The translations under genes were made by a program, and so were the position numbers. From Chrysemys picta bellii (lineage: Eukaryota): a stretch of DNA of 64,000 bases. The first letter of the stretch is position 1; the number at the start of each line of letters is the position of its first letter. Below the pieces are notes generated by a model. It had not been told where the DNA came from, did no database searches, and was given only the letters and a program-made list of their open reading frames with translations. The stretch covers positions 15,872,001 to 15,936,000 of the forward strand of contig NC_088795.1 of the NCBI RefSeq assembly GCF_011386835.1. Direction: 5' to 3'. Positions 13,519 through 25,000 of the stretch are shown piece after piece.

Positions 13519-16015
13519 GCTCATAGCATAGCCAGTGTGATTCCACAGAAGAGATGTTTCTTTGGCATGCCTGGCATCCAGTAACCTAATGTCTCATAGG
13601 TGTTAATTCTAGGATAGACTGAAGTTTCTAAGTAAATATTTTTCAATGTGTATTTGCCATACACGTTCTCGGAGCAATAATTCATTGTCATGCTATTTAA
13701 AAAATACTGTCCGTTTCAAGCCGCAACACACTGTCCAAAGGCGCTTGACAGCACTGCAGTAACTTTCTTGCACCTCTCATTTTAAAAGTTCAGGTACCAG
13801 AACATGTGGTTTCCGTCGCTGTGTGTATACATAGATACAGGAAAATCTGAGATTTTTATTGTTTTTTTTTTTAATGGTAACTGGCAACAGTTCTGCTCCT
13901 TTCCCAGGAGATTAATTGCTTAGCAGTATAGCAGGTGAGGTTGATTTGCACATTAGAAGAGCAAACTGTGGACGCATATGCTGGGAACAGATGCACCTAA
14001 TGCTGGGTACAGCCTTGTTTGGATTCATAACTAGAAGATTTATAAAGTACCATATAAGGAGCAGTTTGAGTTACAGTAGGCAACACATTATAGAATCTTC
14101 TACAGGAAGCTTTGCAAACAAAAGGCAGGAGGTAAAACAAATGAAAAGCAAAAAAGTTCCCTTTAGTGAAAATGTGGTGGTGGTGGTGGTGGTTAGTCTG
14201 GCATGGAAAAGCCTGTGGAGACAGAAGTATGGCGTACGTGACTAGGGTACTAGAATGAGAGCTGGGGTCAATTCCTACCTCAGATGCACTCTTTCTTTGT
14301 GACCTTGGACAAGTTGCTTAATTTAGGTCCTGTCTAAGATGGAGATAAAATTTCCCTCCTCCCCAAGGTGTTGCAAGGATAAAATCCACAAATGTCTGAG
14401 AGTCTCTTGCATACTACAGTGATGAGGGTATATCAATGGCACCCTGGCTCTCTACAGAGCATGGGGCATGTGCCGATGAGTTCTTTGACTACTCAGTCCG
14501 ATGCATGAGTAACAGTCCTGTCCACAGCGCGCACACCCACGCACTAGCAAGGCTCTGAATCCAAACAGCAGATTCTTTCCACCTCTGACACCAGTCTTCA
14601 CAAATCTTGATCCAGTCTGCCTCAATCCCTCGCTCAATCGACAAGCTGAGTCCACCAACCAGAGTGGCATTCTGCACTGCCTTCCCAGATTCTAAAGCAG
14701 TGGTTCTCAAACCCTTTTTTGTACTGGTGACCCCTTTCATATAGCAAGCCTCTGAGTGTGACCCCCCCTTATAACTTAAAAACACCTTTTAATATATTTA
14801 ACACCATTATAAATGCTGGAGGCAAAGCGGGGTTTGGGGTGGAGGCTGACAGCTCGTGACCCTCCCCCCCCCATGTAATAACCTCATAACTCCAGTTTGA
14901 GAACCCTGTTCTAAAGGATACTAAATCCATCTTTGGAAGCATCCTAATCTAGGCAGTGGTCTGCCTCTTTCTAGACCCTTCAAGCTTCCGAATACAGCAC
15001 ACTCTTCAGGATCCCATAATCCGGCATTCGCTTGACATGTCCAAGCCCCCTGCATCTCTTTTCTTACTAATCAACCATCCCATGAATGACATAGCAGCAT
15101 GATTTAACACTTCCACATTTGTCACCCTGTCTTGCTTGTGTAAAATTCTTCCAAGTTGGCATCTGATATGAAAACGGTTTAGTCTTCTGATATTTTGGCA
15201 TAAGTTGTTCATGTTTCTGAGCCACACAGAAGAGTGGATAAAACACATGTCTTCGGAATATGGATTTTCACTTGAGTTGACAACTTGCTGTTCCAGGCTG
15301 TCTTGCAAAAGACCCAAGTTTCTAGCTGCTCTGCCAATTGTACTAGTAAGCTCAGCATCAGGATCTACCTTGCTGGTTACAATAGAGCCAAGGTAGCAAA
15401 ACTGGTCAACGACCTCTAGACAAATACCATCTAAGATCTCTGGAACTGGTTCTGAAGAGCCTTGGTGCATGAGAACAGTCTTTGTCACACTTATTGCTAG
15501 CCCACAGATTTTGCATGAATCAGTAACTTCTCACTTAGTCATCCCAGTTAATGTTGTTTCATTGTTACATTGCTGATCAATTAGAGAACGTGCAATGCTC
15601 CCTTATAACATTTGTTTGGCAGCCGCCTGCTTTGTCTGCTGCTTGCAGGAAAAGCAGCCTGTTGCAGCTAGCTGGTGGGGGCTTGTAACCAGAGTGGCCC
15701 AGCAGCCCCCCTATCAGCTCCTCTAAGTTCCCTGTGCAGCAGCCGCCCAGCAGGCTATCAATTGCCAGCAGTTCAGCTGTCCCTCCCCCCACTGCCATGT
15801 GCTGCTCCTGCCCTCTGCCTTGGAGGTGCAGAGGGGGGAAAGGGATGCTGATGTCTCCCTGCTCCTGTACCCCATCTCCATAGAGCAGGGGGGGGACAAC
15901 TACAGGGCTCAGGACAGAGAGCTTGCTGGCAGCAGCTGCTGTCTCCACTTGCTGAACTACTTAAAAAGGCAGTGTACTTAGAGTGAGGTCAGCGTCCTTA
16001 AAGGGGCAATGCACA

Positions 16016-16053
<38 letters not shown>

Positions 16054-19000
16054 ATGCTGTCTCCCCTCCCTCCATTCATGCTGCCTTGTAAAGTGTGAGA
16101 TTACATTAACAACAATGTGCTAACCCTTGAGGGCTCAGCCGAGTGCTAGTTCATCATTTAGCAGTAAGGCATCCCCTGGGAAATATCCCTCCCTCTTCCA
16201 CCCTCTGACTCCACCTCAGCCAAACTTCACAATCATCATTGCTGTGTACAGTATTAAATTGTTTGAAAACTTATTGTGTGTGGCAAATAAAATTTCCCTG
16301 GAACCTTCCCCGCCCCCCCACTTACACTAATTCTTATGGGGAAATTGGATTTGCTTAACATCTTTTCACTTAAAGTAGCATTTTTCAGAAATGTAATCAC
16401 AATATTGAGCGAGGAGTTACTGTAATATGTTGTAAAGCATCAACATTCTGAGCCACAAATGTTGCATCATCTGCCAACAGATATTAATATTTACTTCTCC
16501 TTCCTGCCTCAATATGTGTTCTGTGATAGGCATCTTCTTGAACATCTTAGCACCAGAGATGATGATTTGCTTAACAGTGCAAGGTTCAGAGCTAAGACAA
16601 AGCTGAAGGAGATCATCTTAAGGGACCTGTTTGCAGATGATGCAGCCCTTGCGGCTCAGTGTTGAGGGCATATAAGTACTTAAATAATTAGGGAATTATG
16701 AAGATTATTAATGGAGTAAAAATGTCAAATCTCCCCTTAGTTCTCAAACACTGCTCCCAGGTTGGCAAACGTATTGTTTTTAATTGTAACCTGTGGTGTG
16801 GTGGTGGTGGTGGATGATCACTTGTTACAGAGTATGATCCTCTTCCATGGGAGTTATGAGTCCTCAGGTGGCAAGGACAACTCTTGAACCACAAGTTCTA
16901 TTACAATGAAGGCAGATGTTTTCAGGCTCAGCAGGAGGTGTTGACCATGACTGGAAGCCAGTCTCTCCTTCCTCCTGTGCTTCTTGTCCTTGTCGGCGAG
17001 CAAATTCAAAATGCAGGGGACCATCACGTAGGACTTCACTCCATTTTACCGATCCTGGGCAAGTGTCTCCCAAGTGTCAATGTCAATATTACTTTTTTAG
17101 ATTGTCCTTCAGCAAGTTCTTATAATGCTTCTGTTGTCCACCCACGTTACGGTGCCGTTCTTTCAGCTGAGAGAACAGGACCTGTTTTGGGAGGCGATGG
17201 TCTGGCATGCCAACAACATGACCAGTCCAGCAGAATTGCTGAAGGATGATGGTTGCCTTTATACTGGTGGTCTTTGCCTCTTCCAGAACACTAATGTTGG
17301 TGCACCTGTCTTCCTATTTGATCTTCAGAATCTTACGAAGGCAACGCTGATGATACCTCTTGGACTTTCAAGTGGTGTCTCTAGGTTGTCCAAGTTTCAG
17401 ACCCATACAAGAGTGTTGGAAGAATAATAGCTTGATAAACAAGAAGCTTGGTGTCTGTTCGAGTGTTGTGATCTTCAAGAAAAAGCTACACTGGCACAGC
17501 TCAGGCGATGTTGAATTTCTGCATCAATATCTGCCTTGGATGAAAAATTACTTCCAAGGTCGACATTCTCCAGTGCCACTCCATTGATTTTGATAGATGG
17601 GACATGCAATACCTTATTTGGAGAGGGCTGATAGAGCACTTCAGTCTTCTTGATATTAAGAGTGAAACCAAGACCTGCATAAGCACTGTCAAACACATTC
17701 AAGATAGTTGAAGGTCTTTCTGAGTGGGCCAAGATTGCGTTGTCATCAGCAGACTGAAGTTCCACAATAGATGTTGTGGAGATCTTACTCGTGGCTTTCA
17801 GCCTGCTAAGCCTGAACAGCTTTCCGTCCATTCTATAAACTACTTCAATGCCGGCTGTAAACTTCCCAGCAATTAGGTAAAGACTAACAGCAATAAAAAG
17901 CGCAAAAATGGTTGGAGCAATGATACAGCCCTGTTTGACTCCTGTTTGTACTTTGAAAGGTTCACTCTGGGAGCCAGTGCTGCTCAGAACAGTCACTTTC
18001 ATGTTATGAAGCAATTTTAGAACACTGATGTATTTATCAGGACATCCAATCTTAGAAAGTACAATCCAGAGGGCACGGTGATTCACTGAATCAAAGGCTT
18101 TAGTTAAATCAATAGAAGCCATGTAGAGTGGTCGGTTTTGCTCCTGATGCTTTTCTTGCAGCTGCCGTGCTGTGAAGATCATATCCGCAGCTCCATAACT
18201 TGGTCAGAAACCACTGTGACTCCAGTAAAATTTCTTCTGATGGGGCAGAAGGCTGGTTGCAAGGATCCACGCCAGAACTTTGCCTGCAACGGCTCGGTGG
18301 GAGATACCACAATAATTTCCACAATCCACTTTATCCCCTTTCTTGAAGAGGGTGACAATAGGGCATCTCATTTTCCTGAGTGTTAAGGAGATCTTCAAAA
18401 TGTTCTTTCCAGCAAGAATTGATGGCTTTGTTGTCCTTCAAAGTGTGGTTCCATCCTTGGAGCGCAGAGGATTCATGCCATGGCAAATTGGCCCATAAAT
18501 AGCCTTGGTGGCACTAAAGAAACCACACGTATTGTGGATATTCACAAGATGTTGGAGTTCTTGCGCTTTCTCAGTTCACCATTTTGTTCTGGAGTTCTCT
18601 GGTTTTACGTTGCACTTCTTCCCTCGCCTTGGCGTGCAACGCTGTTGTTACTACAACAGTTGCAACACTTGAATTTATAAATGACTCTGTAAACCCAGAA
18701 ATGGTAAATATTTTGTTTTGTTCTGTACCAAACTCAGGTTTGGGGGAAATGCTTTAAAACTCTTTAAGAAAAAGGACATGGTTGTAGCATTAACTCTGTT
18801 AGATGAGCAAGTAATAGTACAATAATGGAGCAGTTTCTTTTTACTTCTCAGAATTTTAATTTCTCTGTGGTATGTGCAGAACTCCTGTCATAGTTTCCAG
18901 GTGCTAGATATAGGTCCCTCTTCTTCCATCCAACATGGCAACAGCCACATCAGTATTATAGCCCCACCAGTCAGGAAGCAGGAGGTAAGAATGTCCATAA

Positions 19001-21979: not shown

Positions 21980-22020
<41 letters not shown>

Positions 22021-25000
22021 AGTTCAATTTTCCAGGCTTGAGTTTCAGCAGCTCATGACAGCAACACTATGGCACTGCAATGAAGTCCATTGCATCGCCC
22101 AGGTTCAGAATCCTGTCTTCAGAAAACTTACTGAAAATGCAGAGACTAGTTTGCAGTGGCACGGCTCAACATTCTTCTTTTGAGGTCTAGTCTAGTGGCC
22201 ACAGTGATGTCCTTTCTTTCCTTGTAATAGGTTCTCTATAATGCTGGTGAGAAGAAGTGGGGTACAGATGAAGATAAGTTCACTGAAATTCTGTGCCTTA
22301 GGAGCATACCGCAACTGAAACGAAGTATGACATTGATTTTTGTACCATTTTGTGATATTTCTTATTAAATGATTTGTTTTCTATAGCCAAGCATTTGTAT
22401 GTGTAATTTGGATTGAGGTGCCACTCATTGTCCCACCATCACTTCCCTGGGTCCATCAGCTTTTGCTAAAGGTTGCAGAATAAAAACCTGAGTGTTTCTA
22501 GCTCTCATGGTTGTGAAGATGAGCAGTACTGTGTCCATTCACATATGGAAGGCTGCAATCTGAAACAATAGGTCTAAGATGCACGTATTGTCCTTGTTGA
22601 GTGTGCCACATATCAGCGTGTGTGTAGATTTTTGAAGTGGGCTCTTCCTGTGCAGTTTTACTCTAAGGTATTTTCATTCCCACTTTTGCAGGAGAAGAGA
22701 TGGAAAGTTTGATCTTAAACCCAGGCAGCAGGTGGTCTTTTACTTATCCCTGTCTCCAAAGACTGCGTGGATTGAATAGCGTGCTTTAAATGTAATTGTC
22801 TGCATGTACAAATGTCCTGCAGACTTGGGGACCAAGCAAGCCTCTGATAAGGAAGTAATTGTGTTTGCTATTTTGTGAATCACTGAATGCATCTTTGCCT
22901 TATGACTAATGGAATGTGCTGCATGAGACACCCTCTTTTCTTTATGGGGAAAAAAACAAAAACCCAGGGATCGTGAAAGCTTCAGTGGATAAAATTTGTC
23001 TCCACCCACTCAATATATCGGAGTGTCTTAATTTTATGATTATTAAAGCAAGACAATTGGGTAAATGGGCTAACTGAAGCAGGGTCTGACATGCTGCATT
23101 AAAGAACAGAGGCCAACTGCCTTTAGAGAGAAAGTGGTGAATGTTAAAATGATGGCACTTGAAGGTTGTTTATTCCTTAATATTTTTACATATATACCTT
23201 GATTGGCTTAGAATGATGGCACTGTTGCTCTCATCGTACGGTATGTGTTCATCAAAGGGCTGTTTCAAATAATATTGAAGGTAGTGGAAAGACTCCCATT
23301 AATTTCACTAAGGTTTGGATCAGACCCCAAATGGAGCCTGACACATGAGAACACTGAGTAATTTCCTTGTGATATATGTATCAACAAACTGTTTGGTTAT
23401 CTTTTTAGCATTTGATGAATACAGGAACCTCAGCAAGAAGACCATTGAAGAAAGTATACAGGGTGAAATGTCAGGGCATTTTGAGGATTTACTCTTAGCC
23501 ATTGGTAAGATTCTTGTGGGGGCGGGGGGGGAGAGGCATGGCTGAAAATAAGCTGTGCCTTTTTAAAAAAAAAAAAAAGTAGGATAGGTAAAATATTAGT
23601 CTGAATACCTTTGATTCACAGTGACTTTAATTCTTGCTTTTAGTGATAAGCAGTATCACTGCAGTAAGTATTGGTAACACTGACTTAGGTTTACAAAAAG
23701 AAGAGAGCTTGTTAGTTCTGTAGCATATGTTCAGCTGTGTTGGTGTTACAATTAGTACAGTGGTAGCATCTAGCAGCCCTAATCCTGCACTAGGACTGCT
23801 TTGTGCTAAGTCCTATAGACCAGCACCCCCTCCATCATTTATACTGACTCTAGGCAAGTGCCAAAAAACCCTCCACCATACTTAGGGATGGGTCACCAGA
23901 CTTCAGCCACCCATAGTGCTGAACCATTTCTGTAGCACTATGGGGTATTTTACTTTCAGGGCAGGCCTGAGGGTTGGATAAAGTCTTGTTGTTCTTAACA
24001 ATAGAAATGCTTTAATTAAATATCTATAGATTCACTCTTCATATAAGTGGGTGCATCTCTCATGGGAGTGAGTGTGTAAAATGTATGTAGTTTACCAGCC
24101 TGGGGCATCAGCAGGAAGAGAAGTATAAAGTGAATGCAGAATTGGCCAGATGCATATGTGTATATACCTGACTTGTGCATGCATGTCAGGCATTAACTGG
24201 TACAAGGCTGGTGCATACAATTGCATTTACAGTAACTCCTTGCTTAGCGATGTAGTTATGTTCCTGAAAAATGCAACTTTAAGCAAAACAATGTTAAGTG
24301 AATCCAGTTTCCCCATAAGAATGAATGTAAATGGCGGGGGTGGGCATGGTTAGGTTCCAGGGAAATTTTTTTCACCAGACAAGTCTGTCTTCTAAATGAT
24401 GAACTAGCACTTGGCTGAGCCCTCAAGGGTTAACGCATTGTTAATGCTGCCTCACACTCTACAAGGTAGCACAAATGGAGGGAGGCGAGAGAGCTCCCTC
24501 CATCCTGAGCCCTGTCATGTCCATCTCCCCCCCCCCCCCCCCACTGTATGGAGAAGGGGTGAGCGGGGGGAGGGAGACACCCTGACATTAGCACCCCTCT
24601 TCTCCCCCCCTCCTCCCCCGCCCCGCCCCAGCAAGCAGGAAGTTCCCAGGAGCAGCTCCAAGGTAGAGGGCAGGAGCAGCACATGGCAGTGGGGGGAGGG
24701 ACAGCTGAACTGCCTGGCAATTGATAGCCTGCTGGGCAGCTGCCACACAGGGAACGTAGGGGAGCAGGGAGCTGATATGGGGGGGGGTGACGGGGGGCTG
24801 CCAGTCCACCCACGAGCTAGCTCCAACAGGCTGCTCTTTCTGCAAGCAGTGGACAAAGCAGGCAGCTGCCAAACAAGGTTATAAGGGAGCATTGCACAAC
24901 TTTAAATGAGCATGTTCTCTAATTGATCAGCAACGTAATAACATTAACTGGGAGGACTTTAAGTGAGGAGTTACTGTACCTAGCTTTGAAAATCTGGCCA

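Follow-up and report, generated by a model that had tools for sequence, protein, structure and literature searches.

A 5'-inverted RTE-like LINE within one target-site duplication in Chrysemys picta bellii, a probable product of twin priming

Two opposed LINE pieces within one target-site duplication

The DNA analysed here is a window of 64,000 nt from the turtle Chrysemys picta bellii (NC_088795.1), in which we studied a locus at 14417-16673 (window coordinates, as throughout) that holds a copy of an RTE-like long interspersed element (LINE). Reading of 14200-16900 on both strands revealed two LINE pieces in opposite orientation, with one target-site duplication (TSD) around both. On the minus strand, a LINE reverse-transcriptase (RT) frame runs from 15518 down to the 3' end of the element at 14434, and on the plus strand, a frame that includes the FADD of motif C finishes at 16662. 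In element coordinates, three breakpoints follow one another in the order a (PTLF, motif B), c (LLADD), and b (AALAAQ), with the inverted 5' arm (about 185-190 nt) extending from a to b, the uninverted arm from c to the 3' end, and some 30-39 nt being common to both. The layout thus reads TSD, inverted arm from b to a, uninverted arm from c to the 3' end, and TSD. Here, end b of the inverted arm (around 16656-16665) adjoins the 5' TSD, while the PTLF end a lies at the internal junction (16474), and the element's 3' end, carried by the uninverted arm, stands directly against the 3' TSD.

To place the arms, we performed a homologue search with the 171-residue minus-strand open reading frame (ORF) as the query against 1.84 billion protein representatives, which retrieved 260 relatives, and then located both arms on the retrieved LINE proteins by tblastn and phmmer. 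On one of these (P0066), the plus arm (16474-16656) corresponded to residues 683-745, and the minus arm to residues 736-752 (16480-16424) and 762-917 (15518-15057). Moreover, the plus arm matched 40 distant LINE proteins at i-E<0.01 (best 1.3e-10, phmmer), and in 40/40 its match was positioned just upstream of the minus-arm match with an overlap of 9-10 residues. At the opposite end, the C-termini of three homologues reach 14461-14476 by tblastn, these being P0034 (residues 758-786 of 790 at 14544-14461), P0134 (1049-1089 of 1096 at 14598-14476), and P0104 (1042-1062 of 1070 at 14535-14476). Judged from this placement on homologous proteins, both arms derive from a single LINE RT and face opposite ways. 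The nearest library proteins are just 30-45% identical to the arms (amphioxus, coral, and butterfly among the sources), Pfam gave no match for either short arm, and the breakpoints and microhomology lengths reported here are approximate, as no family consensus served as a reference.

A self-comparison of the region showed that 16448-16480 is the reverse complement of 16627-16659, with 28 of 33 positions identical, and within 14100-17000 a repeat search ranked this pair first among inverted repeats. The minus-strand reading of 16480 to 16424 has the FADD motif C with which the plus arm also closes, and then the residues found ahead of SCKICGL in LINE proteins. These results alter the anatomy given in a preliminary description of this DNA. 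While its minus-strand RTE 3' frame reaching 14434 was recovered as described (with its start at 15518), the minus arm does not end at 15520 as had been stated, but continues past a nested Tigger-like transposon to about 16480, collinear with SCKICGL. Likewise, for the plus-strand piece placed at 16425-16662, the end at 16662 stands, but 16425-16473 belongs to the minus arm. The loss of roughly 10 codons at the break has to be given up in favour of the 30-39 nt arm overlap, with most of the residues thought absent lying beyond the Tigger-like transposon.

A longer overlap of 64 nt, with the arms aligned to 16503 and 16605 and GAAGGAGA in common, was considered and rejected, since 16483-16503 reads NIYFSF and matches the family motif B, and since the 14 intervening nt align only with three gaps. 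Within the plus arm, near breakpoints a and c, there is also an 8-nt complementarity (TCTCCTTC / GAAGGAGA at 16496-16503 / 16605-16612), which could have aided the annealing of two cDNA ends or may be due to chance. The RNA fold of the plus arm was no better than that of shuffled sequences (z -1.12).

The direct repeat noted at the outset (tgagggtatat / tgagggcatat, 10/11) was found again and could be widened to 15/17 (CAGTGATGAGGGTATAT vs CAGTGTTGAGGGCATAT). Of 20,000 pairs of zones of 40 nt drawn at random with the spacing of the locus, 0.7% gave a 10/11 match and 0.045% a 15/17 match. The length of the TSD is 8-17 nt, or 14-17 nt if no indel is assumed, and its only unambiguous target part is GGGYATAT (in the left copy GGGTATAT, 14426-14433). 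In the right copy, the initial 9 nt (CAGTGTTGA, 16657-16665) are also compatible with RTE sequence, for which the counterpart in the uninverted arm is CAGAATGTTGA. As had been described, it is the breakpoint end of the inverted piece, closed by FADD, that adjoins the TSD. At this 5' junction, CAG is certain and up to 9 nt are common to target and RTE (the exact length needs a family consensus), and these 3-9 nt may represent priming microhomology. At the inversion junction, CCAACAG yields the P-T of motif B when read in the plus arm and L-L-A when read in the minus arm, such that the microhomology there may amount to at most 7 nt, with its exact length again dependent on a consensus.

As for the flanks, on comparison with the MIR consensus 14230-14416 (plus strand) is putatively the body of a MIR-like short interspersed element, with its core GTGACCTTGGACAAGTTGCTTAA at 14299-14321, and its tail would resume at 16674 as AAGTACTTAAATAATTAGG. 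Additionally, (TGG)n runs occur on either side of the locus at 14174-14194 and 16806-16826. The right-hand run is the tail of a neighbouring LINE, and beside the left-hand one (gtggtggtggtggtggtgg) there is no LINE homology at the thresholds used.

Table 1. Coordinates of the features that make up the locus
Feature	Position	Strand	Sequence or support
Target-site duplication, copy beside the element 3' end	14417-14433		CAGTGATGAGGGTATAT; 15/17 vs 16657-16673
Uninverted arm, 3' terminal part, LINE ORF C-terminus	14434-14697	minus	Protein homology
Nested hAT-type MITE (14698-14908) with second TSD copy (14909-14916)	14698-14916		Later insertion
Uninverted arm, middle part, RT C-terminal half	14917-15520	minus	Residues 761-917 of P0066, E about 1e-13
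Nested Tigger-like MITE (15521-16422) with TA (16423-16424)	15521-16424		Later insertion, within uninverted arm
Uninverted arm, 5' terminal part, with breakpoint c at its 5' end	16425-16480	minus	P0039 12/19, P0034 9/19
Inversion junction CCAACAG	16474-16480		Readable in both arms
Inverted 5' arm, from motif B of the RT to motif C (FADD)	16474-16656	plus	40 homologues, i-E<0.01
Inverted-arm stretch recurring in uninverted arm (16448-16480), the putative cDNA overlap	16627-16659	plus	28/33
Target-site duplication, copy beside the inverted arm	16657-16673		CAGTGTTGAGGGCATAT

Nested transposons, related species and paralogues

Nested in the uninverted arm are two miniature inverted-repeat transposable elements (MITEs), one hAT-type and the other Tigger-like. 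The first, with the terminal inverted repeat (TIR) CAGTGGTTCTCAAAC, is bounded by a perfect 8-bp TSD (TTCTAAAG), exactly where a nested hAT had been proposed. Its contig depth is about 10^4 times that of single-copy sequence in all four of the related species considered below, and it is a member of a very abundant family; a TIR-like fragment of it is also found at 16740-16752. The Tigger-like MITE retains both of its TIRs (CAGTAACTYCTC) and, rather than sitting at the inversion junction as previously thought, lies wholly inside the uninverted arm, 58 nt away. Another copy, at 24227-24976, is cleanly flanked by TA, while the copy at the locus has TA on the right and only AT on the left. A contig of a paralogous RTE, present in three related species (X8, X9, and X11), links 15520 to 16444 across 33 nt, and as this link, set in frame, reads ...AQNDALQHLVSKFSHSCKICG, the RTE is collinear across the Tigger-like MITE. 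By comparison with the same contig (15505-15525 and 16420-16445), about 15 nt of RTE and the left TA are absent, flush with the intact left TIR, which may reflect either damage to the target at integration or a later flush deletion. Inside this MITE there is also a (CT)n microsatellite at 16017-16050, and a similar one is located 6 kb off at 21983-22020, the two being simple repeats only.

For comparison with related species, we used the Logan contigs of four of these (1.5-2.5% divergent at the locus), and found contigs that span the left junction, the inversion junction, the right junction, and the sampled MITE ends. The left junction is spanned, for instance, by X8 record 16 (13526-14685), the inversion and right junctions together by X8 record 20 (16369-16870) and X9 record 27, and the hAT ends by X11 record 3, X11 record 4, and X8 record 17; X8 record 20 also covers the right end of the Tigger-like MITE. 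Since the structure occurs in contigs from four other species, it is not a misassembly; the inverted structure is real and older than the divergence of these species. Other contigs lie on plus- and minus-arm sequence that is on opposite strands here, with joints at 15521/16658, 15472/16608, and 15523/16516, and the arms are therefore collinear in normal, un-inverted paralogues. Moreover, paralogue depth is alike for both arms, and this similarity, together with the paralogue joints, argues for one family.

Clade of the element

At the 3' end of the element (14434-14450), there is no poly(A), no A-run, and no repeat tail, and the end of the LINE ORF, as located by homology, falls at about 14449-14455, which leaves a 3' untranslated region (UTR) of some 15-21 nt. 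The homologues P0043, P0066, and P0104 have lengths of 1048-1070 residues with Exo_endo_phos and RVT_1 domains, while the studied copy is itself 5'-truncated. Members of the RTE clade reportedly lack poly(A) and have an unusually short 3' UTR (Malik and Eickbush 1998). They terminate in short tandem repeats, often trinucleotide, and a 3' tail of that kind is missing from the studied copy. Because the element has no poly(A), a short 3' UTR, and relatives of about 1050 residues that combine an apurinic endonuclease (APE) with an RT, an L1-type element is excluded and a description as RTE fits. In addition, RTE-clade TSDs peak at 10-12 bp, according to Ichiyanagi and Okada (2008) in so far as they are cited in PMC4245944, and the TSD of 8-17 bp (best 14-17) is compatible with this peak as a single case. 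All the library matches are named only 'hypothetical protein' or 'reverse transcriptase'. The RTE label of the preliminary description is plausible from the architecture of the element, though not from phylogeny, and we use 'RTE-like' for this reason.

A second RTE-like LINE fragment (16803-18629, minus strand) is situated 130 bp to the right and is much better preserved. It includes the RT motifs through to the C-terminus, among them QSADDNAIL, has a CxxC...HxxxH motif at the C-terminus, and terminates in (CCA)n at 16806-16826. Paralogues of it are present at higher depth, and no inverted 5' arm was detected in it. As a reference from within the window, this fragment proved too distant, there being no blastn match, and blastp failing on the plus arm; it is of a different family from the studied copy.

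Twin priming and competing explanations

In our view, the locus probably arose by a single retrotransposition of an RTE-like LINE that was primed from both ends of a staggered target break (twin priming). The same reading had been offered in the preliminary description, and it has become stronger with the anatomy corrected; it fits every testable hallmark. Under twin priming, the bottom strand would have been nicked at ...GGGTATAT^AAGTAC (i.e., TATAT^AAGT), with its 3' OH priming a first cDNA on the 3' end of the RNA, and synthesis would have continued for about 1.1 kb up to breakpoint c (LLADD). A nick in the top strand 8-17 nt away would have freed a 3' overhang able to anneal internally, in that RNA or in another of the family, at GCUCAG/AAUGUUGA and to prime a second cDNA, which would have reached breakpoint a (motif B, PTLF) after about 185 nt more in the upstream direction. 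The 3' ends of both cDNAs would then have been joined at the short complementarity CCAACAG/CTGTTGG, with the outcome that 30-39 nt were copied into both arms, and the hAT-type and Tigger-like MITEs would have entered the uninverted arm later. What is observed in this account is how the arms are arranged and overlap, the TSD, the collinear match of both arms to LINE proteins, and the occurrence of the structure in related species; the order of the nicks, the annealing, and the joining are inferred.

Several of these features have parallels in L1. Overlap of the cDNAs is found in 42% of germline cases of L1 twin priming, with a median of 12 bp (PMC12016303), and since the supposed deletion at the break is instead such an overlap, the locus matches a documented feature of the mechanism. 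Similarly, 95% of 5'-inverted L1 copies have microhomology at the 5' junction (Kojima 2010, PMC2912911), and the up to 9 nt that fit both target and RTE at the locus would be as annealing-dependent priming predicts. Furthermore, the second priming requires, in the model of Yamaguchi et al. (2014; PMC4245944), that the 3' overhang be long, and the RTE peak at 10-12 bp would therefore, under that model, imply an overhang of sufficient length.

Certain points, on the other hand, weigh against twin priming of an RTE element. What we have is a single old copy, in which the arms differ by 15% within the overlap and the TSD copies mismatch at 2/17 positions. The overlap of 30-39 nt exceeds the L1 median of 12 nt (PMC12016303). 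As regards the orthologous loci, the inversion is present in all four related species, but every one has the insertion and no empty site was found among their contigs. The MIR continuity of the flanks is putative, and a search of the window for other MIR copies, made to test this continuity, found none. The template may have been one RNA or two ('dual priming'). Lastly, as stated above, the RTE membership is a matter of architecture and not of phylogeny.

Of the competing explanations, the one that survives best, though we consider it unlikely, is that the inverted piece represents stray filler derived from RTE cDNA or RNA, which was captured at the end-joining of an ordinary 5'-truncated insertion without overhang priming. 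Geometry alone does not separate such capture from twin priming, and an overlap of 30-39 nt in fact sits poorly with two polymerases on one RNA but readily with two molecules; LINE 5' junctions with filler or extra nucleotides are, moreover, known (PMC4245944). However, the filler would need to originate exactly adjoining the truncation point, to be in inverted orientation, and also to finish in up to 9 nt compatible with the target, and while twin priming predicts all three of these features, random capture predicts none.

Much less probable is an ordinary 5'-truncated RTE insertion in which the first 190 bp or so were inverted later by an event at the DNA level, such as transposon breakage, recombination, or template switching. 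The Tigger-like MITE, located 58 nt from the junction and with about 17 nt gone flush at its left end, does point to DNA-level damage nearby, and an inversion associated with this transposon had been regarded as the main alternative. Yet, with both TIRs present and collinear RTE on either side, the MITE is not at a breakpoint, and that alternative falls. A later inversion would also require one breakpoint to coincide exactly with the boundary between element and TSD, and a simple inversion would leave no inverted duplicate of 30-39 nt at the far end. If the short inverted repeats had recombined, in turn, only a to c would be inverted and b would not be moved beside the TSD.

The least probable explanation, by a small margin below the last, is that two independent RTE insertions lie side by side in opposite orientation with a direct repeat by chance, since, dense as RTE-like LINEs are here (the unrelated copy at 16803-18629 is 130 bp to the right), an element inserted through target-primed reverse transcription (TPRT) brings its 3' end while the plus arm, a 185-nt piece from the interior, halts precisely at the repeat, at motif C, the two arms adjoin and overlap in element coordinates, a 15/17 repeat arises by chance at only 0.045%, and there is no alternative TSD around the minus arm alone. 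Snap-back self-priming of the first cDNA was likewise rejected, given that the inverted arm has about 150 nt upstream of anything in the uninverted arm.

Returning to twin priming, the closest counterparts of the locus are the 5'-inverted L1 copies (Ostertag and Kazazian 2001), in so far as these are described in PMC2837659, PMC2912911, and PMC12016303. The likeness extends to one TSD bounding two opposite pieces, the priming end of the inverted piece adjoining the 5' TSD, breakpoints that are near in element coordinates and accompanied by an overlap, and a TSD within 10-20 bp, with possible microhomology at both the 5' and the inversion junctions. In contrast to L1, the element has no poly(A), a 3' UTR of about 15-21 nt, and relatives with APE and RT in ORFs of about 1050 residues, resides in a turtle host, shows the longer overlap already noted, and has its nick site at TATAT^AAGT instead of TTTT^AA. 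A further parallel is Nimb-2_DR, an I-clade LINE from zebrafish studied in chicken DT40 cells (PMC4245944), as it is a non-L1 LINE with a TSD of about 12 bp and a 5' inversion; apart from this one Nimb-2_DR insert, the only 5' inversions that Yamaguchi et al. (2014) reported were those of human L1 in human cells (PMC4245944). This case supports overhang length, not L1 identity, as what permits the second priming, although it is an experimental de novo event in cultured cells, while the turtle copy is a germline fossil of another clade. Dual priming (Meyer et al. 2010, PMC2837659) bears a resemblance in that two cDNAs from two target ends are joined internally, but, as proposed, it involves two RNAs that are each annealed by a poly(A) tail, whereas the second priming in the turtle copy would have been internal, at motif C.

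In the twin-priming literature that we searched, 5' inversions are regarded as belonging to L1 in mammalian cells; the cases are nearly all L1 and none is RTE, which agrees with the claim in the preliminary description of a signature outside mammalian L1, even if an earlier mention of RTE inversions is possible. The locus is a sound but single fossil case, through which a mechanism already known is extended to another clade and another host. On the practical side, such copies are easily mis-annotated as two fragments and can thereby inflate insertion counts. As a germline RTE-like insertion with every testable hallmark of twin priming, it fits an overhang-length rule in another clade and host, and we tentatively raise the possibility, which at present we would rate as somewhat short of even, that twin priming is not specific to L1 but is a general outcome of TPRT wherever the 3' overhang is about 10 nt or more. 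This rule would be testable by a census of RTE versus CR1/L2 copies in one genome. If it is true, turtle RTE LINEs would be expected to include a measurable share of TSD-flanked 5'-inverted copies, and the short-TSD CR1/L2 elements almost none.

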